Shown here one piece after another: positions 5,401-30,113 of a stretch of 64,000 nt of DNA. Below the pieces are notes generated by a model that was not told the DNA's origin, did no database searches, and worked only from the letters and a program-made list of their open reading frames with translations. Both the position numbers and the translations under genes were made by a program. Positions within the stretch are counted from its first letter, which is position 1. Each line of letters begins with the position of its first letter. The stretch spans positions 46,128,001 through 46,192,000 of the forward strand of contig CM060732.1 of NCBI GenBank assembly GCA_030704615.1, in the 5' to 3' direction. This DNA is from Takakia lepidozioides (lineage: Eukaryota; Plantae; Bryophyta).

Positions 5401-6994
5401 AAGGAAGCCAATAATCTACTTGCTGCCTATGCGAATTTGGTTGAACCTCATGCGAAGCGCATGGAGGCTTTACAACAGCAGTTAGAAGTGTACAAACTAA
5501 GAGAGGAGCACACTCTCAGGGGAACCACAAGCAACTTGGTGGATAACAGCCTTATGCAGGTCTGGTTAGCACAAGGGCCAGTGGAGGGCAAAGCACCACG
5601 AAAGCTCACCCAAAGCGAGATGAATGAACATTGCCACAATCACTATAGACAATGTCTATAGTAGGATAGCAGAGTTACAGGAGGATGTAGATAGACTGCA
5701 GACTCAAGTGGAGGACCTCACTTCAAATATCGACAAAAGAGCCTATATCCCTCAGGAACAGCTAATGGCTTCTTATTTGAAAGCCAGAACTTTGGTTTTT
5801 CAGTCTTCATAGGAGGTGCAGGAGATGCCAATGATACAAGAGCCAGTACCACCAACACCACAACAAGTCATTGTACCAATAGCTGAACCTGTTGTTACTA
5901 CAACCACACCACAGCCACCACAGCCTGAGGTATGGGGCAATGCTGCTTTTAACCCACCTAAAACTCCAACTGCAAGGGAGTACAGTAGGGCTATGATTAT
6001 GCCCTTCAACCAAATTCCCATCATGTTGGATTTGGCTTGGAAAGAATTTAGTCCTCCGCAGTCATTCGCACATTACTACCAAATCATGCGTATTTGGCTG
6101 CCACTGGCAACTAGGACTAAAGTTCTTCCGAACAATCGACATATTGAAGATCATCACTTTGCACAATACTGGCATGAGGCAAGTACAATGTTGAAGGAAT
6201 TAATTGCCTTCCAAGTTGTACATGGATTCATTTATACCAAGACCAAGGAGGTAGCAAGTATTGTCATGGGATGCGGGTTATACTACGCTGCTTGTTTTCT
6301 GGTACGTTATCACATTGAGCAGCACAAGATGCAATCGCGCTTTCTGAGTTATTTTTTTGGGGATCATTGGGTCTTACCTTCAGTGCCACCTCATATGTAC
6401 CTATATGAGGCAAAAGTTATGATGCAAAAGGATTCTCAAATTCGTTCATGGTTTCAAGCGGCCTGGAACAATTTATCAACACAGAAATTTGGCATTGATG
6501 ATATTTTCTATAAGGGACATGTGGCATGGAAATACTCGCACGGTGCACAAGTAATTGGTACCCCACTCACCTGGACAGACAAGGAGCTTAGTGTCTTCAC
6601 CAATTTTGCTGTTCAGCGTTTACAGCAAGTTGTAAAATATAAACTTCCAGACATGGTAGGACAACATTGTATGCCCCAGAGGATTCCACAAAAAGTTCGA
6701 CAATTAAAACACCTGAGAGGCGATGAGGATTCTGATACAACTGTTTCTTCAGCGAATTCTTTTGACATGGGAGAAGACTATGCAATTCAGATGGCAGAGA
6801 AGAAGGGACGGGGGTCTCCTATGCCTGAAAGGTTACCTCGATATCAGCCTCCAGAGGGCCTCACTTATCCGGGTAGTGTTCAAACATCTCCGTCAACCAG
6901 TGACAGACCTCGGGCTCGTACACACAGTCCGCCACGAAACTCTCAACGTCAGAAAGGTGCTCACTCACAAAGGTTTGCTAATCGCAATCAGTAA
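2325..6994 (+). pseudogene. Extra 3' ORF of copy A (Athila ORF/env-position domain + coiled coil), disrupted
   Basis: ORFs 2358-3029, 3093-3416 and 3429-4493 share one frame, separated by point stops; then 4561-5661, 5624-5812 and 5816-6994. All match the 1363-aa ORF at 19484-23575. Confidence 0.88.
2478..2751 (+). repeat. Internal tandem array: 10-bp CACAGCC units in 30/60-bp higher-order repeats
   Basis: GACACAGCCTATCACAGCCCATCAAGGCAA-type units; reads as RDTAYHSPSR repeats in ORF 2358-3029. Confidence 0.95.
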
Positions 6995-7032
6995 ACCGTG
7001 AGGACACGGCTTTTTGAGAAGGGAAGGGGTAA

Positions 7033-7973
7033 TGTTAGAGGACTGTCTGGGACTTAGACACTTATACGGGATCTGTAGGGTACCCTTAATTTTTGCACAG
7101 ACTGAGACCAACAGGAGCCTTAGGGGTGACAACGGCGCACTGTAGAGGGGGGTTACACAGTCCGTCACAGTCCAACACAGCCCGTCACAGTCGTCACAGC
7201 CGACACAGCCACACAGCCAGTCACAGCTCATCACAGCCCGACACAGCCAAACACAGTCGCACAGCCAGTCACAGCCCGTCACAGTTTCACACAGCCAGTC
7301 ACAGCTTGACACAGCTGTCACGACCATAGGGAACGGAGAGCAGGACAGGGAACGACTGTGGGGAACAACACCTGCAAATGGAACATGTTAGTTCACGGAC
7401 GACGGTTAGTGAGGGAAACGGTTAGAGCCACGGGTAGGAAGATAAAGGGAGAAGCAAGGACTGAGAGGGGATTCTGGGAAGCATTCACGGGGGGCACTTC
7501 TTGGTCATGCATGAGAGGGGATCGGGCGGAGAGCAAGAATGGAAGCAAAGATGGAGAGCACGGTGAAGGAGGAGAGATGATTAGTAGATGCTTGTTATAT
7601 GCAAAGCTGTAGTGATATTGTAGAGCAGATTAGAGACACAATGGCTTCGGCCTGATACCTGATAAATCATAATCTGATACTTATACGATACAATCACACC
7701 GTGTAGAGAGATCTGAGTGAAGCTGTGGAATGAATGGATGAGTTGATGGAATCCGATAGATTGATGAAGCAAACTGATACTTAATGATCAATGGTAAGGT
7801 AGCTAATATGAATGCGAAAAGGGAAACAAATAGGAAACACCCCCATGATACACTAGCTGTAGGTCATGACTGATTGTTCTGAGCGGGCTGAGTACTTAGA
7901 GATTTCCAACTCTTCTATCTTGGAGTTTCCGCCTCGGATAGCGAAGGGATGGGTGAGTAAAAGCCGCGCGACA
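7033..7973 (+). repeat. 3' LTR of copy A (941 bp)
   Basis: TGTTAGAGG...GCGCGACA, preceded by a PPT; U3 carries a CACAGC repeat tract. Confidence 0.95.
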
Positions 7974-9063
7974 TCCTTCACGAGACTCTCACCGTCGGAA
8001 GGGTGCTCGCTCACAAAGGTTTGCTAATCCCAAACAGTAAACCGTGAGGACACGACTTTTTGAGAGGGGGAGGGGTAAATGTTAGAGGGTTGCTTGGGAC
8101 TTAGACGCTTTTACGGGTTCTGTGGGGTACTCTTAATTTTTGCAAAGACTGAGAAGAACAGGAGCCTTAGGGGTGGCAGCAGCAGGCTTTAGGGGGGTTA
8201 CACAGCCCGACACAGCTTTACACAGCCCGTCACAGCCAGTCACAGCCGCCACAGCCCGACACAGCCCGACACAGCCCGCCACAGCCCGCCACAGCTTCGC
8301 ACAGCCAACACAGCCAGTCACAGCCCGCCACAGCTTCGCACAGCCCGACACAGCCGACACAGCCAGTCACAGCCCGATACAGCCTTACACAGCCAGTCAC
8401 AGCTTGGCACAGCTTGACACAGCCTGTCACAGTACATGGGGAACAGTTATCATTGGCAGGGAACAACTATGAGGGAACGACATCTGCAGAAGGAACGTGT
8501 TACTACAAGGATGACGGTTAATTAGTTAGGTGGTTAGAACAGCTTGCGGGCAGATAAGGGGAGCGGCAACGGAAAGAGGGGACACTTCACGGGGAGCGTT
8601 TCTTGGTCATGTAAGAGAGGAGATCAGGCGGAGAGCAAAAACGAGAGCACGGAGAAAGAGGAGAGATGAACAGTAGTTGCATGTTACATGCAAAGCTATA
8701 GTGAAACTGTAGGGCAGATTAGAGTCATCATGGCATTGGCCTGATACCTGATAAATCATAATCTGATACATATTCGATACAAGCACACTGTGTAGAGAGA
8801 CATGAGTGAAGCTGTGAAATGATTGCATGATTAATTGGAATTAAGTAGATACTGAAGCAATCTGATGCTTCAGTATCAGATAAGGTGAATTGATAACATG
8901 AAGGCAAGAAGGAATACAAATGGGAAGCACAACCATGATTCACTAGCTGTAGGTCATGACTGATTGTACTGAGCGGGCTGAGTGCTTAGAAATATCCAAC
9001 TCTTCTATCTTGGAGTTTCCACCTCGGATAGCGAAGGGATGGGTGAGTAAAAGCCGTTCGACA
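7974..9063 (+). mobile_element. Older related Gypsy copy B: end of extra ORF, PPT and 3' LTR (8080-9063)
   Basis: 7974-8040 repeats the extra-ORF C-terminus (..GARSQRFANPKQ*). PPT GAGAGGGGGAGGGG; diverged LTR TGTTAGAGGG...GCCGTTCGACA. Confidence 0.9.
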
Positions 9064-9430: not shown

Positions 9431-9934
9431 ATGATAATGTGGAATTGTTTGCTTTCTGTCATGGAGTCCAATGGAGATACAGGCATAAATTTCAACGGGT
9501 TCATGGTGGATAGTGCACAGGCTAACTTCAACACTGTGCGCCGAGTTTTTGGATCGGGTGATCCAAAGATCCCCATGCCTAATAGGGAGCGCACTTGTCT
9601 ATTCCACTGGACTCAGTCTCTGGAGAAGCACACGAAGAGGTGCATCAGAAGAGATCTCCAGGCGGAGCACATGAGGCTCTGTTTCATGTACAAGAATGCG
9701 ACTACAATCAAAGAGGCTGATACCAGGTACCAGACAATAAGAGCATGGTGGTTCTCGTCGGGGGCTACTGATAAGGACGGTCTCAAAGAATTGGAAGACT
9801 GGTTGGTCTTCTGGCACTTCAGATACTGGCAATGGGGGGCTTTCATGACTACTATAAGCTGCCTATCACCTCTGCAATCCCTTGTATGTGCCCAGTTTCC
9901 TTCCTTCTTCCCGGAACTGCCCGTGCTTGCATGA
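9431..9934 (+). pseudogene. MULE transposase core fragment
   Basis: Catalytic D (FMVD) and CLFH motif; upstream codons 9064-9430 contain stops. Confidence 0.75.
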
Positions 9935-10441
9935 ATGACGCTCTTTCATTTTCCTTTGGCAAGACATGTCCCTTGAGGACATTGCGGACATGCCGTCCTG
10001 CAACCTGGCAGAAGCGTTCACAACGTCTGGAGGCAACAATCTGGCAAAGCAGGAAGAGATCTGTACATTGCTATGACAGATGATATGATACGAGCTCAAA
10101 ATATCGTGATTTCCTCAGGGGGCGATGTGGGGGCAGGGGACCACTCCAATCAAGGGAGCCCCATCTGGAAGGAGAGGAAAGGTTCGGGACTTGCAAACGC
10201 AAGGTAAATACACCTCCAAGATCAGATGGGGATTCACATCGCCATGATAGAGACAACTTTTCTGTACCCAAGATGTCTCCATTACAACCTATGGCATCCA
10301 GTAGCAAAGATGATGTTGGTGCATCCTCTTGATTGGAGAGGCGAGCCCCCTGTGCACATGTTCACTGCCTTCACCATCTTCGCTGGATCCCCAGACCTTG
10401 TTGCAGCCCTTAGCATCAACTCTGCTGTACCAGCCACATGC

Positions 10442-11467
10442 GTGCACAGGAGGGGGTATTTTTAACCCCCCCATGTACAACATTATACATACATAGGGGG
10501 GTAAACAATACGTTAAATATAAGTCTACAACAAACAATTATCTTGATTAAGAGGGTAGTGTAGTGGTAAGGATTAGCATTGTCATGATACCCATTGTGGG
10601 TTCAAATTACCATGAAATCTCGAGTTTTTCGAAAACTTCAAAAATACATGCTTTTCATTGCACAAATTTGAACTCAAGACCACTTGCACACCACGAGTAC
10701 CTCCATACCACTAGGCTACTCCACAACTCTTGATAAAAATGTAATGATTAACAGTAATATAGAAGAAAGACAGTTTGTTGTGTTTTGTGTCATCGTTGAG
10801 ATCTCCCAAACTGCGGGGCCCCAGCCTTGGTGTTTGGTACCATTGGAAAGCCCTCAATGAGGAGGGGTGCACCGGCTTGGTCTCATAATTTTGGGACTTG
10901 CGGTGTGGAAGATATGAATTTTCAAATACTTTTGGTCGTTGGAAACTCGCGAAAAATAGCAAAGTGGGCTTTCTTGCAACAATGACTGGCTCTTCATTTG
11001 TCATTTGTGCACGGGGACATAAATGTAAATTGGGTTTTTTTTTCAAATATGACATTAACACAATATTGTTTGTAGGATCCTTGAGATCTTCCCAACTGCG
11101 GGGCTTCTAGCCACGATTTTGGTACCGTTGGAAAGCCCTCAATGAGTAGGGATGCAGCAACTTGGTTTCATAAAATTTGGACCTACCGACCGAGGTCTGT
11201 TTTTAAATGAATATATTTGATATAATATAAAGATATATATTATATACATATTTGAGGGTATTTTTTAATGATTGAAAAGGGGAATATACATACAGAAGGG
11301 GGGTGTTTTTTAAAAATTACAAATTTTTGTATATTTACAGAAGAGGGTTTTATAATCTTCAAAAAGTATGTACAGAGGGGGTCTAAATTATCCCAGAACC
11401 CATATACAGGGGTTTTTTTAATTAACCGGCGAACGCACGTGATACACACATTTTATAAAGAGTGCAC
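10442..11467. mobile_element. 1-kb non-autonomous element bounded by GTGCAC, inserted in the MULE gene
   Basis: GTGCAC at 10442-10447 and 11462-11467; removing the element joins ..PATC-VH-PPGS.. in one frame. The right ~260 bp is an inverted homolog of 14083-14348. Confidence 0.85.
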
Positions 11468-12538
11468 CCCCCAGGTTCCACCCAGCCCTGTCCTCTGGCT
11501 TCAACCCCTGGAATTGCGGATTGTCAGCAGGACCGCAGGGGGGCAGTGCAGAAGTCACCTTGTGCGGATTCCGAATGGCACATCGAGCGGACTACTCCAG
11601 GGTCTAGAGTTGGGTGGGCGGCAGTGAGGGCCATTAGTTATGAAAAGTGTAAGTCCAAGATAGCCAAAGGCCTAGCGGGTACTCCAGCTCTGACGTTCAC
11701 AGGTTTGATTCGGCTGTATATGTCGAAGGAGTCCAAGACGCACAAATTTTGGTTTTGCTCGGTCGATATGGCTCACTGTGTGAATGGTACCATCCGCGAC
11801 TCCTGCATTGCTAAGCCTCCCCCACCCACCATTTGGCCAGTGCGGGTAAGAACCTCCCTAACAACATTGGAGATTGGTAAGTTGGAGGACGTCGGCTTTC
11901 GTCTTCACCGATCTGTAGCGGCGACTGTTGGTGGCCCTGCTGCTATAGTGCCTCCACCAGACGATACTTCGCATCCCACAAAAAGAAATGGAAAAACAGT
12001 GCGTCATGTGGCTTCGGGGCCTGATCATGGTGCGAAGGTGGAATCTGCCAGAGTACTGCAGGTTCGGGTAACAAGAACTATGGAAATACCTTCACTTGGG
12101 TATGGATGGGTGTATACTTTGGTCACATCTGGGTTTGTTTTGCATGAGAAGGCCTATCAAGTGACGGTGGGAAATTTTCCAAGGTGTACCTGTCCCGACT
12201 TTGTGTGCATGCGTGAGGCAGCTCTCGGGAAGAAAGGAAAATGGGTTCCATGCAAGTATCTTTACTACATCTTTTTGCGCAGGATGTATTGTGATCCCAG
12301 AAGAGACCAAATCATTCACCAGGCGACACTTGGTCCTGGCGAGGTACGGACACTTTTGCAGGAGACATTGGCAATAGTGAGTAGTGTTGCATATGTTGTG
12401 ATTTGTCGCCATGTCCACAAGGGTTGCATTGTTTGTAGAACATCCTCTGGTTGTGCTGCCAGTGACATTGCGTCCTATACATTCACATTCATCGTAACTG
12501 AATGTATACACGGTTCTTCAATAACGAGAACCTGGTGA
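11462..12538 (+). pseudogene. C-terminal, SWIM zinc finger-containing part of the MULE gene
   Basis: YQVTVGNFPRCTCPDF...WVPCKYLYYIF (SWIM, with H>Y). Confidence 0.7.
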
Positions 12539-12714
12539 AGGCTCACAACAAAAGGTCGATTTTTTTCTCATTGGGTTGGTTTACGAGCCTCTAAAACTGT
12601 GTGCGTCAACGCACACCACTTCTGCCCCCACCACACACCCCCCCCCAAAAAAAACAAAAATGAAAAAAAAATGGAGGTTTTTTGTTCGCGAGGCTGCCAA
12701 ACCTGGACAACTCT

Positions 12715-13670
12715 CACTCATTTTTTTTTCCACCTCTTCTTCAGAAGCAAAGCGTAAATGAGCTACATAATGACCATCTGATTGTTTTTTCACCTCTGCT
12801 TCTATAACAGAAACCTGAACAAGTTTCACAATGAGAACTCATTTTTATTTCACCTCTTCTTCAGAAGCAAAGCCTAAATAAGCATTCATGATGACCATCT
12901 GATTTTTTTTCACCTCTTCTTCAATAACAGAAACCTGAACAAGTTTCACAATGAGCGCTCATTTGTTTTTCACCTCTTCTTCAGAAACCAAGCCTAAATA
13001 AGCATTCATGATGACCATCTGATTTTTTTTCACCTGTTCTTCAATAACAGAAACTTGAACAAGTTTCACTGAGAGCTCATTTTTTTTTTCACCTCTTCTT
13101 CAGAAACAAAGCCTAAATAAGCATTCATGATGACCATCTGATTTTTTCACCTCTTCTTCAATAACGGAAACCTTAACAAGTTTCACAATGAGAGCTCATT
13201 TTTTTTTCACCTCTTCTACACAAACAAAGCCTAAATAAGCATTCATGATGACAATCTGATTTTTTTTCACCTCTTCTTCAATAACAGAAACCTTAACAAG
13301 TTTCACAATGAGAGCTCATTTTTTTTTCACCTCTTCTTCAATAACCTAAACCTTTGCCTGTTTCACAACGAGAGCTCATTTTTTTGGACCTCTTCTTGAG
13401 GCACAAACCCTACATAAGCTTCAAGTTGACCTTCCGCATTGTTTTTAACCTCTCTCTTCAATTTTCATCCATCCATCATCCATGGATGGAATATTGCAGA
13501 TGTCAGTAAGCTTCACAATGAGCATCCAAATTTTTCTTACCTCTTGTTCATGCAAGAAACCCTAAATAAGATTCATGATGACTCACCTAGCCTTTTTTTT
13601 TCCACCTCTTCTTCAATAACAAAACGTCAGTAAGCTTCACAATGACCATCCATTTTTCCTACACCTCTTT
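12715..13670. repeat. Subterminal tandem array, ~59-bp units alternating A/B (~118-bp dimer)
   Basis: Core TTTTTTTTCACCTCTTCTTCA followed alternately by GAAGCAAAGCCTAAATAAGCATTCATGATGACCATCTGA or ATAACAGAAACCTGAACAAGTTTCACAATGAGAGCTCA; decays after ~13380. Confidence 0.93.
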
Positions 13671-13866
13671 TTTTAGGCGCTACAACTGCTTCCACGATAA
13701 TAGGACCCATTCTAAACAGAGGACTCGGGTATGGGCCTTGTTTCTCCCTCCTCTAAACCTTGGGCTCACGCTTAGCAAGCGTGAGCCTAGGCTCACGGTT
13801 AGAGGGCAAAGCATGAGCCGAGCTCCTGGGCTCACGCGGCTAGGCTCACACTGTAGCTTCGTCCTA

Positions 13867-14082
13867 CAAGAAGGTTGACAGGGAAAACATGGCGAATTAC
13901 CGTCCAATCACACTGCTGAACTCCAAGTACAAGATAATCGCCAAGGCTCTGGCCTTGAGACTACAACCCCTGGCCGAGTTTCGTCGCACAGTTGCCCAAG
14001 ATCATAAGGAAAGAGCAAACTGGTTTCCTAAAAGACCACATGATCCTTGACAATATTTTGCTGGCCCATGAGGCCCTAGGAG
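13867..14082 (+). mobile_element. LINE reverse transcriptase fragment
   Basis: KKVDRENMANYRPITLLNSKYKIIAKALALRLQP...KEQTGF...ILDNILLAHEAL. Confidence 0.85.
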
Positions 14083-17000
14083 GTGCACTCTTTATAAACT
14101 GTGCGTATCACGTGCGTTCGTCGCCTAATAAAAAAACCCCCTGTATACGGGTCCTTGGATAATTTATACCCCCTCTGTACATACTTTTTGAAGATTATAA
14201 AACCCCCTCTTGTAAATATACAAAAATTTACAATTTTTAAAAAGTACCCCCTTCTGTATGTATGTTCTCATTTTCCATCATTAAAAATAACCCTCCAATA
14301 TGTATATGTATGTTTTTATATTATATCGAATTTATTCATTTAAAACATAGAAAAATCTAACAAATTAATTTTAAAAAAAAAATTGCCTTTGATAAAGTTG
14401 TCAAAGACTTTTCGGTCATTTGCATCAAGTACATATGTGTTTGACTTGACATTGTACTTTAAACATGCTAACGCGATAATGGAATCCAAATCAACCATCA
14501 TGTTATCCGTCAAATCGTACGTATAGACCCCTCCTCGAATTTTTTGGTACCATGCTAACCCAATCTCCATATGAGAATGACGCTCCAATAAATCAACAGA
14601 ATCCCTACATTCTACAAACCGCTTATTGATTTTCTTCCGGATTCTTTGAACCCTGCCCAAATACCAAGTGCCTTTGGTTGCTCCTCTGCAGGTTTTCCCT
14701 GGTCTGCCTTTCCTGTTTGTAGTTTGGATCGCAGTCTCCTCATCAACAAAAAATACAGCACAATCCAAACCCAATCCCAAGCTCGTGGCTTTGTTGTTGG
14801 TAGTTGGTTTGTTTTCTCGGCAAAACAACATCGATGCACTTCTTACTTTTGTCAATCTATCCTTGGATAGAGTAGGGTTGCCATTGAGTTGGCTAACCAA
14901 AGTGCTTTTGAATATGGTCTTCCCGTCTACTTTGACAAATGGAACCACCGCCTTCGATCCATCTTTCTCTTGTTCAAACTCATCAATGACAGCATCCAGA
15001 GTATGTCTCAATTCACTTTGAATAAGTACCTCTTCCGCATGATCATCCAAAGGTTGGCTCAAAACATCCTCCATTGAATTCGAAGGCCCGCACACCAATT
15101 CATCTTCCACGACCTCATTTTGAATATGTGTGTCTGCATTAAGAGGACAAATAGAATCTATGGCATCGACATCATCACCCTCCTCTTCCATGCTTTTGAG
15201 TAGCTCGGCCTCCATTTGTCTCTCAATTGTCCATGGCTCATTCCACCGATCCAAGTTTGTCGCTTTGTTTGGTTTCATCCCAAGTTTATGGCATAAAAGT
15301 TGCGCTTCTAGAAATCCAGTTTTCAAAGCCTCCACAATGCAATCATCCGATTGGACAGTAGAAAAGTCGGACAAATCAGCAAGGGGGATACCTGGCTTCT
15401 TCTCCAAAGAAAACCAAATGTGTTCTTGTTTCTTGTGAGCTCTTGAGAACTTGGGTCCTTTTGGATTCACCTCGAACTCGGATATGCGTGTTATTGCTCC
15501 CGCACTCTCAATCAAATCACACCCGTCATATGTCCTCTCATTCCGTAACATACCTCCCACTTTGCTGAAGAATATTTCACACACATCTGAACCAACAAGG
15601 CTCAAAGGAACTTGCACATGATTAAACTTATCCTTGAACAATTTGAAAAGTAGAACCACGTAGTGGCATGAAATTTGTAAATCCAAGTATGCTTCCCTGC
15701 TAATGAAGAAGGATTTCAGATTATACACCTCGTGGTGGAATAACCACAACTTCCACAATCTGAAAAAAAACAATACCTTCGCAGCAGATTGTATCCTCTC
15801 ACACAATGACATGTGAGGAGACAAAAAAATGTCGATGTAGCATGAAATGATGTATAGGTAAAATTCAGTACCTCTGGTCCTCTCCCTTCGATGATTCACA
15901 GTTGATTGTAACTCCCTCAAACAAGCTTGCACCTTCCGAGATGCCAGTCGTTGAGCTGCTGCCCAATTCTGTCGATTTTCTCTTTTGATATCACATTCCC
16001 GAAGTCCATGCTTGTCCACTGAAAATGAATGGTAGACCAATAACACATGATTCAATGTAGCAACCTCATCACCCAACACCAAAGTCCGTGATGCACTGTC
16101 CAAGGGATTTACCAATTTTTTCCCATTGTGGATGAAGTCCTGATCATGGAGTCCGTATATATCTCCCCCGTTGCACACTCGACCTGTAAACAACCATCCT
16201 TCCCAAGGGATGCAAAATCTACTTCCAGTCCCATTGGCATAATCTTCTAACATCACTTTTCTCCTCCTACTATCTCCGTCTGAAGCATGCCCAATTATAG
16301 CCCAACCACGTCCCTCACATATTTGTCCCACAACTGTCTCACCACTTCCCATTGTGATCTCACAAAATTGTTGTCGAATCTATTGCAAGTGAGCTGGATT
16401 ACCAATACCAATCGAGGTAATCGTACATGTAGAGGATTTGCTATCAACACTCTGGCGTAATGGGCAACCACATTGTTTTTGAATGCCTCCACAATATGTT
16501 CGTACCCTGATTCCCCTTCTCCCACTTGCACCACAAAATTTGAAATACATACATGGTTGTCTTGAAGCCCACAGAACTCGAGAAGGGTGTCATCCCTAGC
16601 AATCCAACGTACCAATCGCTTCACAACAGTTTCATCTTCGGCCACCATCACTGGGATGCTTCCCATTGGAATATTTGCATCTTCCATCACATCTCTGTAA
16701 ATTCCAGCCACATGCTGAAATATATCATCCCTTTCTCCCGCTCTATACTTCAAACCTTTCCTCAAAGACCGTCTTGTAGTATCAATAGAAGGACCCCCCA
16801 CATTTGAAGCCAAAAAATGATGCAATCTCGGACCCCCCCAAAGCTGCACAGTCTCAAACATTGTTTTTGTGCTAGTACCATACCTCTTCCCTTGTGGAGA
16901 CCTGTCAATATTCTTGCCCATATCAACAAGAAAATCCCACAAACTTTCTTTTCCTTCAAAATCCCCCCTCCTATGTGCATCAACAATATCACGACAAAAT

Positions 17001-18383
17001 TTGAGAACATCTCCTCTTTCAATTGCCTCAATCCCAGACTCCTTCAAACTCTTACATCGCACAGACAAGGATGCCACTTTGGTCCTGGCCTCCCACAATT
17101 TGAACCTCAACTGCCTCAACTCCTGTCTGTTTTTGTAAACTTGTTTGACAATCTCGACATTTCCAAGATATGACAACCTTCTTCCCTTGCCAGTATCTCT
17201 CTCCCCTCTATATTCCATGGCACCTCTCTCTCTATATACCCTCATTCTGAAGTCATTTTCCAAGGGAATGGAAGAACATGCTGAACACCTCAAGTTGGAA
17301 ATGGCTCCCCATCCAATGACACTCTAAAACAATCCGCGTGCCGAAACGTACCAACAACATATGCTCTTGATTGTTTAGAGTGATGGTTGCATGTGTCAAC
17401 GGCTCGACATACCACTTCTTTCCTCCCTTGCTATCTTGAAGGAATGGTTTCAGACTTATTCTCTTGTGGTTGTACTCCCACCATTCATCCCATAGGCCCC
17501 AACACAAACTGTCTCTTCCTTTGTTGCATTGGGACCTTCGCTATAATTGTCAATCCTCAATCAGATCTGCCCGTTGGGCAGCGTCAACACAAGTGTATGG
17601 AGTTTGTGACGAGGATGCTCCCATTGTTGATGCCACAATTGGATTGTCAAGTGGTGGGGGACGGCAACACAGGTTGACTGACCAAGAAAGAGCTTAGATC
17701 CCGTTGCTTTACATCTTTGGCAATCATAGGCTTTGGAGGCCTTCCTCTCTTTTTGCACAGTCCTTCACTACTTTCAACCTTCTGGCAAATCTCTGCATCG
17801 ACATAAGTTTTCCCTTCACATGCTCTGTCAAAGAAGATTGCAAAGAACCTGTCCTTGGAAACAAGAGTAGCCACTTCGAATCAAGTGCGCACTTAATCCT
17901 TATGGAACCCAACTGCGAATAGTCTCATCTGTTTCCAGGATTGTCCTCACAAAACCGAGCGACTTCCTCTAATGCCTCCTTCACCATGTTCTTCTTTGCA
18001 TCTAATGCTTCATCTGCATTTACAGGGCTGATGACACATTGTGATGAACCCTTCCCATGACGCCTCTCATAGGCTATGCGATGCCCCTCACTCCTCAAAT
18101 GAGATCTCATAAAGTTTGCACTTGCATCATATGGTTTGTTTATCCTAGACCGTGCATGAACATCCTCACACTCAACACACCATATGTGGAACATTGCTTG
18201 TCCTTGTTGATCCTTTGTCATGAGCTCAAATTTGTCACATCGTCCTTCTGCAGAGATTTTCCTTTCAACGGCTCTAATCTCTTTCTGCCATTTTTGAATA
18301 TCGCTGGATGTAGCCAATGTGCTGCACAATCTACCATATCTCTGTTGAAGTGCATGCTCATGTGCATGGTCTTCATTTCCACC
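14083..18383 (-). mobile_element. DNA transposon with P-superfamily-like DDE transposase, cut at 18383 by the Gypsy LTR
   Basis: Terminus GTGCACTCTTTATAAA.. is shared with 10442-11467; the transposase ORF ends at 14340, directly inside this terminal segment. Confidence 0.75.
14340..18383 (-). pseudogene. P-like transposase (>1,300 codons, frameshifted) with N-terminal Zn fingers and AT-hook
   Basis: EDETVVK, GHASDGD, QDFIH (DxxH), NRQNWAAAQRL and SDVCEIFFS in ORFs 16295-17293 and 14340-16352. Upstream CVEC...HLRSEGH and KRGRP. Confidence 0.7.
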
Positions 18384-19328
18384 TGTCGCGCGGCTTTTAC
18401 TCACCCATCCCTTCGCTATCCGAGGCGGAAACTCCAAGATAGAAGAGTTGGAAATCTCTAAGTACTCAGCCCGCGCAGAACAATCAGTCATGACCTACAG
18501 CTAGTGTATCATGGGGGTGTTTCCTATTTGTTTCCCTTTCCGCATTCATCTTAGCTACCTTACCATTGATAATTAAGTATCAGTTTGCTTCATCAATCTA
18601 TCGGTTTCCTTCACTCATCCATTCAATCCACAGCTTCTCTCAGATCTCTCTACACAGTGTGATTGTATCTTATAAGTATCAGATTATGATTTATCAGGTA
18701 TCAGGCCGAAGCCATTATGTCTCTAATCTGCTCTCCAATATCACTACAGCTTTGCATATAACAAACATCTACTAATCCTCTTTTCTCCTTCATCGTGCTC
18801 TCCATCTCTTGCCTCCGATCTCCGCTCCAGCCTGACTCAGAAGTTCTCCCCGAATAATGATCCCCCTCCTTCATTCCCCGTTTCTCCCTTTATCCTCCTA
18901 TCCGCGGTTCTAACCGTTTCCCTCTCTAACCGTCGTCTGTGAACTAACATGTTCCCTTCACAGGTGTTGTTCCCCACAGTCGTTCTCTGTCCTACTCTTC
19001 GTTCCCTATTATCGTGACAGCTGTGTCAAGCGGTGACTGGCTGTGTTTTGGCTGTGTCGGCTGTGACTGGCTGTGTTTGGCTGTGTCTGCTGTGACGACT
19101 GTGACGGGCTGTGTTGGCTGTGTGGGCTGTGACGACTGTGACGGGCTGTGTGGGCTGTGTGGGCTGTGACGACTGTGACGGGCTGTGACGGGCTGTGACA
19201 ACTGTGTAACCCCCCTCTACAGTGCGCTGCTGTCACCCCTAAGGCTCCTGTTGGTCTCAGTCTGTGCAAAATTAAGGGTACCCTACAGATCCCGTATAAG
19301 TGTCTAAGTCCCCTACAGTCCTCTAACA
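18384..19328 (-). repeat. 3' LTR (945 bp)
   Basis: TG..CA ends; PPT at 19332-19344. Confidence 0.96.
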
Positions 19329-19331
19329 TTA

Positions 19332-19344
19332 CCCCTTCCCCCTC
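19332..19344 (-). promoter_or_regulatory. Polypurine tract
   Basis: GAGGGGGAAGGGG, 3 nt before the 3' LTR. Confidence 0.9.
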
Positions 19345-19483
19345 AAAAAGCCGTGTCCTCACGGTTTACTGTTTTCGAGTAGCAAACCTTTGTGAGTGAG
19401 CACCTTGTTGACGTTGATAGTTTCGTGGTGGGCTGTGTGTACGAGCCCGAGGTCTGTCTCTGGTTGATGGAGATGGTTGATCA

Positions 19484-22400
19484 CTACCTGATAAGTGAGG
19501 CCTTCTGGAGGCTGATATCGAGGTAATCTTTCCGGCATAGGAGATCCCTTTGTTTCTTCTCTTCCATCTGAATTGCATAGTCTTCTCCCATGTCAAAAGA
19601 ATTCTGTGAAGAAACAGTTGTATCAGAATCCTCATCGCCTCTCAGGTGTTTTAATTTTCGAACTTTTTGTGGAATCATCTGGGGCATACAATGCTCTCCT
19701 ACCATGTCTGGAAGTTTGTATTTTACAACTTGGTGTAACCGCTGAACAGCAAAATTGGTGTAGGCACTGAGCTCCTTGTCTGTCCAGATGAGTGGGGTAC
19801 CAATTACTGGTGCAGCGTGCAAGTACTTCCATGCCACATGTCCCTTATAGAAAATGTCATCAAGTCCGAATTTCTGTGTTGACAAATGGTTGCAGGCTGC
19901 TTGAAACCATGAACGAATTTGAGAATCCTTCTGCATCATAACTTTTGGGTCATATAGGTACATATGAGGTGGCACCGAAGGTAATACCCAATGATCTCCA
20001 CTGGAGTAACTTTGAAAGCGTGTTTGCATCTTTTGTTGCTCAATGTGGTAACGTACCAGAAAACAAGCAGCGTAGTATAGCCCGCACCCCATGACAATAC
20101 TTGCTATCTCCTTGGTCTTGGTATAAATGAGTCCATGTACAACCTGGAAAGCAACCAATTCCCTCAACATGGTACCTGCCTCGTGCCAGTATTGTGCAAA
20201 GTGATGATCTTCAATATGTCGATTGTTTGGAAGAACTTTAGTCCTAGTTGCCACTGGCAGCCAAATACGCATGATTTGGTAGTAATGTGCGAATGACTGC
20301 GGAGGACTAAATTCTTTCCAAGCCAAATCCAACATGATGGGAATTTGGTTGAAGGGCATAAGCATAGCCCTGCTGTACTCCCTTGCAGCTGGAGTTTTAG
20401 GTGGGTTAAAAGCGGCATTGCCCCATACCTCCGGCTGTGGTGGCTGTGGTGTGGTTGTAGTAACCACAGGTTCAGCTACTGGTACACTGACCTGTTGTGG
20501 TGGTGGTACTGGCTCCTGTATCATTGGCATCTCCTGCACCTCCTGTGAAGACTGAAAAGCCAGAGTTCTGGCTTGCAAATAAGAAGCCATTAGCTGTTCC
20601 TGAGGGATATAGACTCTTTGGTCGATGTTTGAAGTGAGGTCTTCCACTTGAGTCTGGAGTCCGTCTACATCCTCTTGTAACTCTGCTATCCTACTATAGA
20701 CATTGTCTATAGTAGTTGTGGCAATGTTCTGCACCTGCAGTCTGAGCTCATTCATCTCGCTTTGGGTGAGCTTCCGTGGGCTTTTGCCCTCTACTGGCCC
20801 TTGTGCTAACCAGACCTGCATAAGGCTGTTATCCACCAAGCTGCTTGTGGTTCCCCTGAGAGTTTGCTCCTCTCTTAGCTTGTACAATTCCAACTGCTGT
20901 TGTAAAGCCTCCATGCGCTTCGCCTGTGGCTCAACCAATTGCGCATAGGCAGCAAGTAGATTATTGGCTTCCTTCGAAGCCTTGTTACTGACCGCGATTT
21001 CATTTCTATTGGCCACGATGGTTTGTTGCAACTCCACGATGTGTTTCTCTTGATCAGCTTCCCTCTGCCTGTATTGCTTGAAAGTATCTTCATGGCGACA
21101 GATTGTATTCTTCATATCGACAATGAGCTTCATTTGCTCAACATTCTCTTCTTCTGCCTTCGTACATTTTTCCGCTTGACTGTTTATTTCTTTTGTTGAT
21201 TGGTCAAGCATAGTTGTAAATGTAGCACATTGTATCGCCATCCTGTTATGCACTGTCTGCAACTCCGTATGTAGTGCATTCAGTTCTTGCAACTTGCTTT
21301 CATGCTGCACCTGCATTTGGTATAGCTGTTGCTTATGTGCTTCGTGCAACTGGTCTTGCGCGAGGCCTGCCTCAATCAATTGTTGCTTGGCCAACTGCAA
21401 AGCCATTTCTGTATTGCCCAAGTCCTGCTTCATCTTGAGAGTGACCTCTTCATCGACCTTGTTTGCACACTCAGTGGCAAGTCGAGCCTCAAACTCCTTC
21501 CTGAGTTCCTCTTTCAAGGCTGTCAATTGGGTAATTGGAACATGGGATTTGACATAAGTCCCCAACAAATTAAGTGTCCTGCCTATGGAACTCATCAGCA
21601 TTGCCTGTTGAGGGTCATCATGGTGAGGTTGCTGCTGTTCCTCCTGATCTTCAACAGTATGATGTCTCACTAACCATTCAGGCCATTGTCCCACCGGATT
21701 TTCTTCCTGAACTACTTCATCTATGACTGGTGTTACAGTGTCATGACCTTCCGCCTGTGGTACCTCCGACACAGGTGTGTGCATTATATGCACCTCAGGA
21801 TTTCCCTTGGGCAACTGTTGCACCTCTGGGATTTCTGTCTCCTTGACCAGACCAGAATATTCATAGAGAAGGTCCCCTTTCTCTATTTCTGCCACTATCT
21901 GTTCTGTAGTTGGAATATCTATCCCTTCACTTTCCAAATCAATTATTTCGGGTTGAGCTGCATGGATAACTTGTGACCTTGTGACAAGTCGTTCAAGTGG
22001 CTGTGTTGGCTGTGATGCAGAAGTAACTTCCTCCTCCCTCTCTGAAGGTCCTGCTTCCAGTAATAACATTCTTTTGTGCTGCTGTGCCCCTTCCTGGTCA
22101 TGAGCTTGGGAAACATTATCATGCGGAATCCGTGAAGCCAGTGGATCCGCCACTACAGTCTTTCCCCTTCTCTGCCTCTTAGTCTCGGGTTGTGCTGCTA
22201 GTCCACCCTCACTGTGTGAAGAGCCTTGCTCTTCCATTGCAGTTGTTTCTGGCTCAAACACTCCCATTTCCTTCCTTTCTTGTGCATTAAGTATGCCAGA
22301 ATTAAGGATTATTTGAGCAATGATTGGGCCAGACACTATGATAGGAGACTTTGCGGTAGTACCTTGTAATCTTTTCATCTCCTCTACTAGTGCGTTGTAC

Positions 22401-23575
22401 ATTATGTCCGCCCATTGTACCTCTTGTCCCTTCAGGCCTTTGAGTATTTCCTCTGTGAAGGATCTGCTCAAATATTGTTGGTTCTGTTTCAGGGCAAACA
22501 GAACGTTCAATACCTGGCCTATCTCTTTTAACCCTGGGTACACAGCTTTGGTACAAGCATAACCCTGAGTTTTAAAGAAACTCCCTTCTTGGAATAAGTC
22601 CCCTATTTGCAGTCTTGCCCTGTGTTCCCCCACATGCACCTGACCTGCTGGCAATCGAAACAATTGCTGGAGGTATAGGGGAGTAATCATTAATTCAACT
22701 CCCTTCACCGTTGTTGTTCCTGTCCTTGGCTCAAAGTTCTGCAAAAATTGTAACATGTACTGTCTATGGTGTAGTGTCCAATCTAGGCTTTGCAATCCTT
22801 CCAATCTCAGCTCCTCCAGTATCTTTATCGCCTGTGGGGTAGCCATCGTTTGTTTCTGCAGAATTGTGGTGCTCTTCACCCTGATTTCCTCCATTCCTCT
22901 CACTCTCTTCATCTTAGACTCACAGAACTGCTTTGGCTGTAACAACTGCAGGAATGCCTGTAGTGCACAAAGCAGAAACGTATGGTTGCCGCAGAAAGCT
23001 ATGGGTAATCTCTTGTAAGCCTGCGGGGCTTGCAAGCATTGCTCAAGAGAAAAGCTCTGCTCTGTCGTTTCGTGTCTATGCCACTGCGTAAGTAATATTG
23101 CGAGCGTATAGTCTGTTAGTTCCTCCATAGTTTCCAAGTTATAGCATTTATGGCCTGTCCTGTCGAGACGCCCGTTACTCAGAACGACGCCGCCTCTTGC
23201 GCTCAATTTCCCTCCATTTTCTTGATCATTTCTCTGGTTTTCTATTGGCTGTATCTGCTGTGACTGGATTTTAACTTTTATCTTCTTTAGTGGACTTTCC
23301 CTGTTGGATAGTCCACTAGGATCACACATGCGACATGAATTCGGTTTTTCTGTACTTGCCGTTCGTTCCGTTTCCCTTTTTCCGTATTCATTAATGGGCC
23401 CGCCTTTCATCCCATTTGACGGCCGTTCTTGTCCTCTTTCTTTTTGACACCTGTCCTTGCACTTCATTCTCTGCTGTGTGTCGCACCCTGACCTCCACGT
23501 GTCTATTTTTAAAGTTAATTTCCGTTTCTCTTCCTTCAGCCATTTTCCTGAAGTTTTTATGTGTCCACTTGTCAC
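19484..23575 (-). CDS. Extra 3' ORF of the retrotransposon (1363 aa open; consensus probably ~24104-19366)
   Basis: Long ORF. MLQFLQNF...TVKGVELMITPLYLQQLFRLP resembles the Athila ORF/plant transposon protein domain; long coiled coil; Pro-rich linker; aromatic C-terminal domain. Conserved in copy A; frameshift near 19547. Confidence 0.85.
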   Translation of the reverse strand: MTSGHIKTSGKWLKEEKRKLTLKIDTWRSGCDTQQRMKCKDRCQKERGQERPSNGMKGGPINEYGKRETERTASTEKPNSCRMCDPSGLSNRESPLKKIKVKIQSQQIQPIENQRNDQENGGKLSARGGVVLSNGRLDRTGHKCYNLETMEELTDYTLAILLTQWHRHETTEQSFSLEQCLQAPQAYKRLPIAFCGNHTFLLCALQAFLQLLQPKQFCESKMKRVRGMEEIRVKSTTILQKQTMATPQAIKILEELRLEGLQSLDWTLHHRQYMLQFLQNFEPRTGTTTVKGVELMITPLYLQQLFRLPAGQVHVGEHRARLQIGDLFQEGSFFKTQGYACTKAVYPGLKEIGQVLNVLFALKQNQQYLSRSFTEEILKGLKGQEVQWADIMYNALVEEMKRLQGTTAKSPIIVSGPIIAQIILNSGILNAQERKEMGVFEPETTAMEEQGSSHSEGGLAAQPETKRQRRGKTVVADPLASRIPHDNVSQAHDQEGAQQHKRMLLLEAGPSEREEEVTSASQPTQPLERLVTRSQVIHAAQPEIIDLESEGIDIPTTEQIVAEIEKGDLLYEYSGLVKETEIPEVQQLPKGNPEVHIMHTPVSEVPQAEGHDTVTPVIDEVVQEENPVGQWPEWLVRHHTVEDQEEQQQPHHDDPQQAMLMSSIGRTLNLLGTYVKSHVPITQLTALKEELRKEFEARLATECANKVDEEVTLKMKQDLGNTEMALQLAKQQLIEAGLAQDQLHEAHKQQLYQMQVQHESKLQELNALHTELQTVHNRMAIQCATFTTMLDQSTKEINSQAEKCTKAEEENVEQMKLIVDMKNTICRHEDTFKQYRQREADQEKHIVELQQTIVANRNEIAVSNKASKEANNLLAAYAQLVEPQAKRMEALQQQLELYKLREEQTLRGTTSSLVDNSLMQVWLAQGPVEGKSPRKLTQSEMNELRLQVQNIATTTIDNVYSRIAELQEDVDGLQTQVEDLTSNIDQRVYIPQEQLMASYLQARTLAFQSSQEVQEMPMIQEPVPPPQQVSVPVAEPVVTTTTPQPPQPEVWGNAAFNPPKTPAAREYSRAMLMPFNQIPIMLDLAWKEFSPPQSFAHYYQIMRIWLPVATRTKVLPNNRHIEDHHFAQYWHEAGTMLRELVAFQVVHGLIYTKTKEIASIVMGCGLYYAACFLVRYHIEQQKMQTRFQSYSSGDHWVLPSVPPHMYLYDPKVMMQKDSQIRSWFQAACNHLSTQKFGLDDIFYKGHVAWKYLHAAPVIGTPLIWTDKELSAYTNFAVQRLHQVVKYKLPDMVGEHCMPQMIPQKVRKLKHLRGDEDSDTTVSSQNSFDMGEDYAIQMEEKKQRDLLCRKDYLDISLQKASLIR

Positions 23576-23601
23576 TGATTCTATGGATCGTGTAACTTTA
23601 G

Positions 23602-23955
23602 TAGGCTGTGTTGAGCTGTGACAGGCTGTGTCATACTGTGTTTCGCTGTGATAGGCTGTGATGCCTGTGGTAAGCTGTGATAGGCTGTGATGCGCTGTGT
23701 TGAGCTGTGACAGGCTGTGTCATACTGTGTTACCCTGTGATAGGCTGTGATGCACTGTGGTAAGCTGTGATAGGCTGTGACACGCTGTGGTTATAGGCTG
23801 TGTGTGCGCCTTGCTGGGCTGTGGTTGGCTGTGTCACGTCGTGACGGGCTGTGGTTGGCTGTGTCACGTCGTGATGGGCTGTGGTTGGCTGTGTCACGTC
23901 GTGATGGGCTGTGATAGGCTGTGTTGCGCCTTGGGGGCTGTGATAGGCTGTGTCC
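23602..23955 (-). repeat. Internal CACAGCC tandem array
   Basis: Same 10/30-bp units as 2478-2751, with different copy number and small indels. Confidence 0.95.
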
Positions 23956-24099
23956 CGTTTGTTTTGCCCACCCTGGTCGTATATGCTGGGCCCAGCAACA
24001 AGTGTTCCATACTCCGTTCGTAACACTGGTGCAGCCCGTGACTGTTCTTGCGGTTCTATATGCAAATCATGCTGCAGGGGTTTGTCATTGATACCACTG

Positions 24100-27000
24100 T
24101 ACCCTTCAACTTATTTGCATTGACTCTTCCCAGCATTTCTTTGTTAATGGTTTGTAACATAGCGGTGTTGTTATCATACATCTTTTGTATGACATAAGGT
24201 CATTTCCACGGTGATTTAAGCTTAGAAGCTTGAATCTTTCCTTTCTTCTGCAACCATAGAACCAAATCCCCCGTCTTAAAAGTCTTTAACTTGCCTTCAT
24301 CAAACTGTTCCTTTCGCTTCATCTGAATTCTGGTCATATTATCAGCTGCATCAGCACGTACTTCTTCCACATGGTATAATTCATGTTTCCTGACCTTGAT
24401 GGAGTCTTGCAATTCCATTCTTTTTCCCCACTCCGTTCTCATGGTAGGTAACAGGAATTCCACTGGAAGTAAGGCTTCCATACCATAAACTAATTGGAAT
24501 GGTGTATAATTAGTGGTGACTTTATATGAAGTCCTGTATGACCATAAAGCTGTCAGCAGCTTTGTATCCCAATCCGTTCTGTTTGCATTGACTATCTTAG
24601 CCAAGATAGTACATAGTATTTTGTTGGTAGCCTCTGCCTGCCCATTACCCTGTGGGTAATATGTTGTACTCTTTCTATGCACAATCATAAACTCTTTAGT
24701 CAACAACTCAATGGTTTCATGAAGTGACTTCCTTGATCACTGATAAATTCTAAGGGACAGCCAAATCGTGTAAGTATGTTCTCGTACAGGAACCTTGCTG
24801 TGGACTTGGCTGTGTTGTCCCTCAAAGCTTTAGCTTCCACCCACTTTGTAGTATAATCAGTGGCTGTAATTATGTACCTGTTTCGTGTATTCTTGGATGG
24901 TGGATTAATTGGTCCAACAAAGTCTAGTCCCCATTTCTGAAATGGTTCCGTAGGCATTGTAGGATGCAAGGCCATCCTTCCAGATCTCTGCAAAGGTCCT
25001 AGCCTCTGACATTCATCACACTTCTGACAATACTCATGTACATCTTTGAACAAAGTAGGCCACCAGTATCCTGCGAGTAGTATCTTTCTACTGGTAGTCT
25101 CTTCTCCAAAATGACCTCCAGCCACTCCTTTATGAACTTCCTCCAAGACTTTATTTACTTCATGGTGGTACAAGCATCGTTTTAGTACTCCATCAGGTCC
25201 TAACTTATACATTCTGCTTCCTACCATAGTATAAGGTAAAGCTTTGATAGCAATTCTCTTCCTCTGCTCCTTACCATAACTAGGTGGGCACTGACCATGA
25301 GCAAGGTAGTATCTGATTGGCCACTGCCAATCTAACCATTCATCTGCACTTCCTTGCACCTCCATTACAAATAAACTCGCATCAGGTAACTGATCGTCCA
25401 CTCCTGTGGCGGCCTCTCCTGTTGTTAGTCGTGACAAATGATCTGCCACAAGATGCAAACGGCCAGGCTTGTAAATAACCTCGAACTCAAACTCATGCAA
25501 GATTATTAACCACCTCGCTATCCTTCCACTTATCAAAGGTTTGTTCACCAGATATATCAGAGCCTGGTGATCCACATAAAACATAAACTTTCTTCCCAAT
25601 AGGTAATGCCTGAATTTCTTGACTGCATAAATCATTGCCAATGCTTCTCTTTCCGTTGTGCTATAGTTCCTCTCAGCACTGTTCATCAACCGGCTAGCAT
25701 AGTACACAGGTGAATCTATATTCCCTGTAACATTCTGGGCTAACACCGCACCCAACGCTTCTCCTGATGCATCGCAGTGAACATGAAATACTACATGCCA
25801 GTGAGGGTTAATCAGCACAGGTGTAGTTGTTACTGACAGTGTAAGTTCCTCAAACGCCTGTTGACATTCAGCTGTCCAGGCAAACACTGCATCTTTCTTC
25901 AGAAGCTTGCTCAATGGTGCTGCTATTTGTGCATACCTTTTGACAAATCTTCTGTAATAACTGGTTTGCCCAAGGAATCTTCGTAGACTTTTAACATTCA
26001 CTGGTGGTGGAGAGACTTTAATGGACTCTGTCTTCCTGGGATCCACAAGAAGTCCCTTCTTACACACAATGTGTCCCAGAAGCACCCCTGAGTTCACACA
26101 GAAAGTACACTTCTCTGGATTCAAGCCCAGACCTCTCATCCTGCATCTGGCCAGGCATAACTCCAATTTATGCAAGTGCTCATTCTTAGAGCTGTACACA
26201 CTGAAATCATCCAAAAACACCTGCATGAAATCATCCAGATACTCATGAAAAGATTCACTTATCACTCTCTGAAAGGTCGCTGGTGCATTACAAAGTCCAA
26301 AGGGCATGACTTTGTATGCATAAGCCCCCCAGTCTGTGATGAAAGCTGTTTTCCCTTGGTCTTCTTCTGCCACTTGCACTTGATTATAACCACTGAAGCC
26401 ATCCATGAATGAGTACATCTCATGGCCTGCCACAGTGTCTAATACTGCTTCTGTGAATGGCAAAGGGAAAGGATCTTTCTTCGTACAAGCATTCAGCTTC
26501 TTATAGTTCACACATACTCTTAGTTTGCCATTCTTCTTTGGAACTATAACAATGGGTGACAACCAAGTTGTATACTCTATTGGGTATATAAACTTAGCCT
26601 CAGCCAACTTCTTTATCTCTTCTCCAACCTTCTGTGCGTAGTTGGGATTCATTCTATACCTCGCCTGCTTGATTGGTACTGACCCTGGTTCCAGTTCAAT
26701 CTTATGCTGACAGACTTCAGGTGGTATCCCTTTTAGATCCTCATAGCTCCAAGCAAATACATCTCTGTATTTGATGAACAAGCTTTTAGCTTCTTCGAAG
26801 AATTCCGGCTCCAAATCAGCTCCTACTTTCACCATCCTCGGTTCCTCCTGAGTTCCCACATTTACTTCTCTCACCTGCTCATCAGCTGTGATTGTCCAAC
26901 CAGTCACCACTTCATCCTTTAAGCTCACAGTGGCTGGTTCTTCTAGGATTTCTATCTCTCCCTCCTTTTCTTCATAGAAATGTGGTGGGTAACTGCTGGT

Positions 27001-30092: not shown

Positions 30093-30113
30093 GTCCCATG
30101 TCTTTCATTTCTT

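Follow-up and report, generated by a model that had tools for sequence, protein, structure and literature searches.

Two dead copies of a P-like DNA transposon family, probably with ordinary terminal inverted repeats and 8-bp target-site duplications, in the moss Takakia lepidozioides

The DNA considered here is a 64-kb stretch of contig CM060732.1 of Takakia lepidozioides (positions 46,128,001 to 46,192,000 of assembly GCA_030704615.1), which we call the window and to which all coordinates refer. Within plant DNA that is rich in transposons it carries a large, frameshifted DDE transposase gene on the minus strand (14340 to about 18377) and, nearby, a small insert of about 1 kb (10442-11475). 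A previous sequence-only reading had taken the two for an autonomous and a non-autonomous member of a P-like family that lacks a real terminal inverted repeat (TIR) and has GTGCAC at its junctions. Our analysis makes it highly probable that they are two dead members of one cut-and-paste DNA transposon family, the transposase of which is a distant structural relative of Drosophila P and THAP9, and that this family has an ordinary TIR and an 8-bp target-site duplication (TSD). The observations of that reading are largely real, with the boundaries shifted by 8 nt, and the mechanism that it proposed is refuted.

The transposase gene and the element that interrupts it consist of the following parts.

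14340-16352, minus strand: C-terminal transposase open reading frame (ORF) of 670 codons, holding SDGD (second catalytic D), DxxH, a helical insertion domain, the catalytic E (CEIFFS) and a putative BAH-like C-terminal module
16289-17302, minus strand: middle piece of the transposase in a different frame, with a Cys-rich module, a long helix, a helix-turn-helix-like region and the first catalytic D (AEDET)
17299-17903, minus strand: decayed N-terminal pieces of the transposase in two further frames, with a C..H..H finger remnant and the AT-hook KKRGRPPKP
17811-18377, minus strand: N-terminal zinc-finger module WCxEC...H...H, identified by tblastn against ORF1 of L003 and residues 128-342 of the L015 ORF
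18384-19328, minus strand: 3' long terminal repeat (LTR) of a Gypsy element (partner LTR at 30702-31735, 85.5% identity), with TG..CA ends and a polypurine tract adjoining 19328

The gene is split into at least four frame pieces, as judged from the ORF listing and from tblastn with intact relatives. The segment 16298-14391 aligns without a stop to residues 503-1099 of the intact relative P0001 (48% identity), and the ORF that contains it has the motifs SDGD, DQDFIHNGKK, RQNWAAAQ and SDVCEIFFS. Upstream, 17302-16289 matches residues 170-505 at 49% identity, with one internal stop relative to the ORFs of L015 and L017; AEDET falls in the ORF 16295-17293. A third frame aligns at 17358-17293, and 17903-17355 and 18377-17811 constitute the N-terminal zinc-finger parts. 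The decayed pieces, with ORFs at 17647-17874 and 17724-17912, match P0001 residues 2-168. All of the motifs previously listed for a large DDE transposase (the first D, SDGD, DxxH, RQN..AA and D..E.FFS) are present in window ORFs, as are the zinc-finger-like motif and the AT-hook. The zinc-finger module is a separate ORF1 in the window copy and in the L001 family (the closest family, with 48% protein identity, found on plant contigs in ENA assemblies), where a stop, or a short intron, lies between it and the transposase. The two are fused in L015 and L017, the uninterrupted reading frames of which (L015:860-5356 and L017:1190-5734) comprise 1,498 and 1,514 codons.

At 18384 the P-like element is interrupted by the Gypsy LTR. 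By comparison with L015, about 1 kb is gone, comprising some 127 codons together with the left TIR and the 5' region; a search for the lost 5' end beyond the Gypsy element (31736 onwards) and through the whole window gave no match. The Gypsy element itself is large (18384-31735, minus strand), and its LTRs are merely 85.5% identical. No TSD is formed by its flanks, CCACC and ACGAC, a sign that copies may have recombined. The same LTR recurs at 4-684, 6960-7973 and 8006-9063.

The window pieces were searched separately, and natural intact relatives were folded in place of a frameshift-corrected window protein. Pfam gave no match in the window pieces or in intact relatives of 1,122-1,514 aa, and no transposase domain in the window ORFs and 19 relatives; a profile search of PDB sequences was likewise negative. 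The structural comparison gave a different result. An AlphaFold2 model of P0001 that drew on 81 relatives (pLDDT 79 overall, above 95 in the core) matched the Drosophila P element transposase (6p5a/6pe2) in Foldseek with E values of 4e-10 to 7e-10 and TM scores of 0.67-0.69. VIA-align superposed 405 of 442 residues (model residues 288-781 on chain residues 137-566) with Z 27.5 and a root-mean-square deviation (rmsd) of 4.1, far above the next matches, namely Transib (Z 11.9), RAG1 (10.4), ISCth4 (8.9) and Hermes (8.4). Since Pfam is silent and the fold match is strong, the P-like assignment, which agrees with the sequence-only reading, is supported by predicted structure and not by sequence profiles. 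In the model Asp389, Asp509/511 and Glu746 occupy the usual RNase H positions, with the helical insertion between them in the predicted secondary structure. The acidic residues fall on β1 (AEDET), after β4 (SDGD) and in the helix that follows an insertion of about 190 helical residues (CExFFS). This insertion (P0001 residues ~557-742) is located where P has its GTP-binding insertion domain and is spanned by the alignment to chain residues 137-566. The ESM-Atlas clusters nearest to the core carry the TNP-like/THAP9 Pfam families PF21787, PF21788 and PF21789.

Outside the core the resemblance to P gives way to other modules. Pfam detected no THAP domain in the window pieces or in the intact relatives, as had been claimed. 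The N-terminal region instead has a C2H2/BED-like finger, an AT-hook, a conserved C...CxxC β module and then a long helix. Its conserved Cys pattern, C-x(11-14)-C-x2-C, differs from the C2CH of THAP, and a separate model of this Cys-rich module (P0001 residues 90-300, pLDDT 90) matched no PDB fold above Z 5.3. The C-terminal ~120 residues (P0001 970-1092; window ~14391-14760, minus strand) are predicted to resemble BAH domains, with Z 7.8 to EBS, 7.3 to AIPP3 and 6.7-6.8 to DNMT1, ORC1 and MTA1; we regard this as a lead only. In the relative P0080 a PTM/DIR17-like Tudor domain stands at the C-terminus instead, and other relatives have SAP or C1 domains.

The ends of the two window copies are best described from the following features.

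14075-14345, minus strand: 3' terminal and subterminal region of the autonomous copy, with a CACGTGCGTTC box at +33 to +43 and three CCCCNNNTGTA repeats
14075-14089, minus strand: right (3') TIR of the autonomous copy, CCTAGGAGGTGCACT on the plus strand, degenerate (two G>A differences from the small insert)
14067-14074, unstranded: flank of the right end of the autonomous copy, CATGAGGC; the other end of this copy is lost
10442-11475, plus strand: non-autonomous derivative of about 1,034 bp, with the right end complete and the left end without the outer 8 nt of the TIR
10442-10500, plus strand: left end region of the small insert, GTGCAC(A), corresponding to TIR positions 9-15, followed by CCCCNNNTGTA at 10467 (plus) and 10490 (minus)
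11461-11475, plus strand: right TIR of the small insert, AGTGCACCCCCCAGG (reverse complement CCTGGGGGGTGCACT), placed by the terminus and TIR alignments
11476-11483, unstranded: right flank of the small insert, TTCCACCC, the expected TSD copy, with no left partner

The segments 14075-14345 and 11201-11475 are inverted copies with 87% identity, aligned over 271-275 nt inward from 14075 and 11475, so that the terminal segment previously reported to be shared by the end of the transposase gene and the small insert is indeed common to both. The inner edge of the segment in the autonomous copy coincides with the transposase stop codon TAA (14342-14340); because the segment reaches the stop, the small insert keeps a complete 3' untranslated and terminal region. 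The scattered short motif noted earlier in these termini is specific to the family: all seven copies of CCCCNNNTGTA in the window lie within element termini, including the left 60 nt of the small insert, against an expectation of 1.3, and a count of seven was reached in none of 100 shuffles. The copies in those 60 nt place the left part of the insert in the same family, and the insert was rightly considered to be a non-autonomous relative.

The element boundary does not lie at GTGCAC, as had been thought. This hexamer occurs at 10442, 11462 and 14083, among 17 occurrences in the window compared with about 12 expected from base composition. The similarity between the two copies continues for 8 nt beyond it, to 11475 and 14075, where the outer 8 nt, CCTGGGGG and CCTAGGAG, are identical at six of eight positions (estimated chance ~0.004). 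The termini align as CCTGGGGGGTGCACT... in the small insert and CCTAGGAGGTGCACT... in the autonomous copy, and the TIR at 14075 aligns from its first base with the small insert terminus and with the TIRs of 20 ends of relatives. Over its final 45 nt the small insert shows 78-79% identity to the right terminus of L001 and L005, with coincident ends. Judged from these alignments, the TIR of the window family is CCTGGGGGGTGCACT and GTGCAC represents its positions 9-14, inherited element sequence that is neither target nor junction. The junction at 14083, which had been counted as independent, is the same inherited TIR sequence.

A set of 22 ends, drawn from the window, from metagenome plant contigs and from the Riccia sorocarpa chromosome assembly, aligns to give a TIR of 15 nt (up to 26 nt) with the pattern CYCGGGG-N(2-5)-CACT. 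A conserved subterminal box, CA[CT]GTGCG(TT/AA), lies ~33-42 nt inside nearly every one of these termini (the window, L001-L021, L037, L002, L006 and L007). It is kept between the window family and those of the liverwort Riccia and is a candidate binding site for the transposase. At the TIR position of GTGCAC the relatives read GAGCAC, GGGCAC, GGTCAC, CTCCAC or TGTCAC, with CAC alone conserved. Six copies of the L001 family (L001, L003, L004, L005, L008 and L009) all end in ...AGTGGAGTCCCCRGG and then diverge completely. The same TIR, of 15-26 nt, is present at both ends of all five relatives for which both ends are available (L015, L017, L002, L006 and L007), and the terminus is linked to the transposase ORF in the L001 family, L015, L017 and L002, as the sequence-only reading required.

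Three complete relatives have perfect 8-bp TSDs that differ from one another. In L015 (6.1 kb) the TIR, CTCGGGGGGGTCACTCCTCATAAAAA, is perfect over 26 bp and GTTTTCAT adjoins the element on either side; the two ends of Riccia sorocarpa L002 (9.2 kb) each read CTCGGGGATGTCACT, with GATGTCTT beside them; and Riccia sorocarpa L007 (12.2 kb) has TIRs CTCAGGGATGTCACT and CTCATGGATGTCACT with TGAGAAAC on each side. The chance of a perfect 8-bp flank match is estimated at ~1.5e-5 in each case. These ends show a family with TIRs of the ordinary kind and with 8-bp TSDs that vary, the pattern that the sequence-only reading had itself set down as fatal to its mechanism; its statement that there is no real TIR does not survive, the 15-nt TIR being conserved across the family with GTGCAC inside it.

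Other ends of relatives were less informative. The contigs L012, L013 and L014 yielded no usable element ends. A putative left end of the L001 family at L001:719 was rejected as a truncation, since L003, L008 and L009 continue into 73-bp tandem repeats; the 5' region of this family contains a TAACACA microsatellite and tandem repeats of ~73 bp (L009:600-930, L008:1-410, L003:1-190 and L011:1-290). At L021:2702 there is a family terminus in the opposite orientation, 95% identical to the right end of L018 over 284 nt and overlapping the end of the transposase match at 1029-2747; one family member may here have inserted into, or next to, another.

The left junction of the small insert is different in character. 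The sequence to the left of GTGCAC at 10442 reads ...CCACATGC and not CCTGGGGG, and no 8-bp repeat of TTCCACCC was found left of 10442, leaving the insert without a TSD. The small insert is probably truncated on the left. Symmetric TIRs in each of the five relatives with both ends favour a later deletion, which most likely took away the TSD, 8 nt of the TIR and perhaps host DNA and left the insert immobile. A candidate left TIR upstream, at 10133-10145, was rejected because nothing ties it to the element. Both window copies are dead, as the frameshifts and stops, the degenerate TIR, the cut by the LTR and the truncated left end show between them.

Excision of 10448-11467 removes 1,020 nt and leaves one GTGCAC with the flanking ORFs, 10226-10465 and 11462-12538, in the same frame, as had been reported. 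This had been read as the restoration of a host gene, and the observation is weak evidence: a multiple of three is expected in one case in three, the host is a decayed Mutator-like element (MULE) and its homology starts only at 11648. The empty-site test by means of host homologues gave a single match (P0150), which aligns with 11648-12241, far from the junction. The host MULE transposase extends over 9431-12538 (plus strand) with a core piece GFMVDSAQANFN...CLFHW, and its ORF 11462-12538 has a SWIM-like motif, CTCPDF...CKY (CxC...C). Within the small insert there is a direct duplication of ~115 bp (10784-10897 and 11069-11182, 285 bp apart, 80-85% identity). The tRNA-like appearance of 10545-10720 was dismissed, ARAGORN and Rfam recognizing nothing there.

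We considered two other accounts of the ends. The mechanism proposed in the sequence-only reading, in which a family without a TIR duplicates GTGCAC as a fixed target or else, with no TSD, places CAC...GTG ends between GTG and CAC, draws on the hexamer at all three junctions, on the single GTGCAC and common frame left by the 1,020-nt removal and on the absence of a G-run TIR at the left end of the insert. It is nevertheless very unlikely, given that the 8 nt shared beyond GTGCAC are the start of the conserved family TIR, that relatives read GAGCAC, GGTCAC, CTCCAC or TGTCAC at this position, that three of them have variable 8-bp TSDs and that GTGCAC is common in the window. Alternatively, the small insert might be intact with asymmetric ends, the left starting at or near GTGCAC (or CACAGGAGG) and the full G-run TIR being present on the right only. 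Family-specific subterminal motifs do follow directly after the left GTGCAC, subterminal spacing differs between left and right in relatives, and the left end of the closest relatives, the L001 family, has never been seen. The symmetric TIRs of L015, L017, L002, L006 and L007 and the missing 8-bp repeat of TTCCACCC make this quite improbable, and we prefer a left end that was lost by deletion.

The nature of the element as a whole can also be questioned. A repeat search reports the two terminal segments as an inverted pair 2.6 kb apart, as would be seen if 11201-11475 and 14075-14345 were the TIRs of one foldback-type element (11201-14345) that had landed by chance beside the transposase stop. 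The family TIR, which in relatives is outermost and adjoins the TSD, lies at the inner edges of these arms (11475 and 14075), so that they represent two element ends facing each other; moreover, the outer edge at 14345 coincides with the stop codon, the homologous segment in the L001 family is a right end downstream of the transposase, and there is no TSD at 11201 or 14345. We consider such an element to be extremely unlikely. Between the two facing ends lies a tandem array with a repeat of ~60 bp (12665-13670; units 60-120 nt apart, 61-97% identity). It is somewhat less unlikely, though still improbable, that the family belongs to a described superfamily other than P that lacks Pfam coverage or has an 8-bp TSD, such as Novosib, hAT, Kolobok or Dada. 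No Pfam P/THAP9 model matches any member, there is no THAP domain, and TSDs of 8 bp are typical of hAT as well and have been reported for Novosib. The Z score of 27.5 to P transposase compared with 8.4 to the hAT transposase Hermes argues otherwise, and Kolobok is defined by TTAA targets, in contrast to the variable TSDs found here. Dada has no TIRs and a D-68-D-176-E spacing (PMC3706591), compared with approximately D-120-D-235-E and TIRs in this family. The catalytic domain of Novosib is poorly defined (PMC5751038) and Novosib was compared by description only.

Several observations weigh against the assignment to a P-like family with symmetric TIRs and 8-bp TSDs. The P kinship rests on predicted structure and language-model features, with no Pfam P-element model matching any member. 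The symmetry of the TIRs and the 8-bp TSD are taken from relatives with transposases that are 39-48% identical, no copy of the window family having both ends, and the left end of the L001 family was not reached, its contigs breaking in 73-bp tandem repeats. L006 and L017 have both TIRs and flanks that do not match, which may reflect rearrangement or assembly chimerism. Finally, the presence of GTGCAC exactly at the left junction of the small insert is unexplained; we attribute it, and the restoration of frame by the 1,020-nt removal, to chance or microhomology.

In our preferred interpretation the autonomous copy would correspond to the minus strand of 14075-18383, keeping its 3' end and a frameshifted transposase gene of ~1,370 codons, with its 5' ~1 kb removed by the Gypsy LTR retrotransposon. 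The ~1-kb insert (10442-11475) would be an internally deleted non-autonomous relative that retains the whole 3' region up to the stop and part of the 5' end; an intact left end of the window family would then start CCTGGGGGGTGCAC. Transposition would be of the cut-and-paste type, by analogy with P elements: the subterminal boxes and the CCCCNNNTGTA repeats are the probable binding sites of the transposase, the two ends would be paired and the element excised, and reinsertion with an 8-bp stagger would duplicate 8 bp of variable target sequence.

Comparison with Drosophila P and human THAP9 reveals likenesses in both protein and DNA. In the predicted fold the match to 6p5a takes in the DDE core of RNase H type, the helical region upstream of it and the large helical insertion, a DxxH motif follows the second D, and the long helix after the N-terminal zinc module is comparable to the leucine zipper of P; TIRs with internal subterminal repeats and variable 8-bp TSDs are also shared. 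The differences are considerable. Sequence identity is ~14% with no match to a Pfam P/THAP9 model, a BED/C2H2-like finger module, an AT-hook and a C...CxxC β module replace THAP, and there is the additional, putatively BAH-like C-terminal module. The protein has ~1,100-1,500 aa compared with 751 aa in P, and the TIR of 15-26 nt starts CYCGGGG, whereas that of P starts CATGATG.

With hAT elements (Hermes and Ac) the family has in common short TIRs and the 8-bp TSD and, in the protein, an N-terminal zinc finger of BED-like type and an insertion domain within the RNase H fold. It differs in that the Hermes fold match is poor (Z 8.4, rmsd 7.5-8) and in having DxxH rather than CxxH, and Pfam scans of the window pieces and relatives found no hAT dimerization domain. 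Kolobok, which has a DxxH motif, is considered to be related to P and duplicates a TTAA target; we know of no solved Kolobok structure. Our TSDs are of 8 bp and none is TTAA (GTTTTCAT, GATGTCTT and TGAGAAAC). Dada lacks TIRs; its targets are U6, U1 and tRNA genes, its TSDs are of 6-7 bp, and it has CCCC/CCHC fingers with D-68-D-176-E (PMC3706591). It resembles the present family in its large DDE transposase with DxxH, zinc fingers and no Pfam coverage, and its behaviour recalls the earlier idea of a fixed target and no TIR. The present family differs from it in having TIRs, no fixed target and other finger patterns and DDE spacing; the flanks are not RNA genes, with no tRNA or Rfam match at the window insert and unrelated, variable flanks in the relatives. 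Novosib, by description only, is similar in its 8-bp TSD, its origin in green algae and its lack of a Pfam domain, and its RNase H domain is considered uncertain (PMC5751038).

P-like elements in non-seed plants are not unheard of, since the P-MITE database paper placed some families of MITEs (miniature transposable elements with inverted repeats) from lower-plant genomes in the P superfamily by their TIR and TSD features (PMC3964958). No transposase or autonomous partner was described for those MITEs, in contrast to the present family. Beyond that remark, we found no literature on a named plant P-like transposon family. A profile of 16 full-length members retrieved 5,758 clusters at 50% identity, 977 of them at E ≤ 1e-30, with named matches in Riccia (liverworts), Adiantum (a fern) and a coral, and a metagenome scan gave 74 loci. 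We tentatively suggest, as a reading somewhat less likely than not, that these sequences may form a very large, unnamed and Pfam-invisible deep branch of P-like transposons, in which THAP has been replaced by other zinc modules, a C-terminal BAH-like chromatin-reader domain has been acquired and the ends have their own architecture (a CYCGGGG..CACT TIR and the CA[CT]GTGCG box).

No new transposition mechanism is indicated by these results, and the DDE transposon without TIRs and with a fixed palindromic target that had been proposed for this locus is not real. For annotation, the family can be recognized by a signature that combines the 15-nt TIR, the subterminal box, the 8-bp TSD and a transposase of ~1,100-1,500 aa with AEDET, SDGDSRRR, DQDxIHNxKK, DRQNW and CExFFS, and it draws attention to P-element-like transposons in moss, liverwort and fern genomes that are missed by domain libraries and Pfam-based transposable-element pipelines. 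The possible BAH-like C-terminal module offers a lead on how such elements choose chromatin. If the suggested branch is real and no Repbase superfamily covers it, then it would deserve the status of a family or superfamily, and P-type transposition would be firmly extended into land plants.

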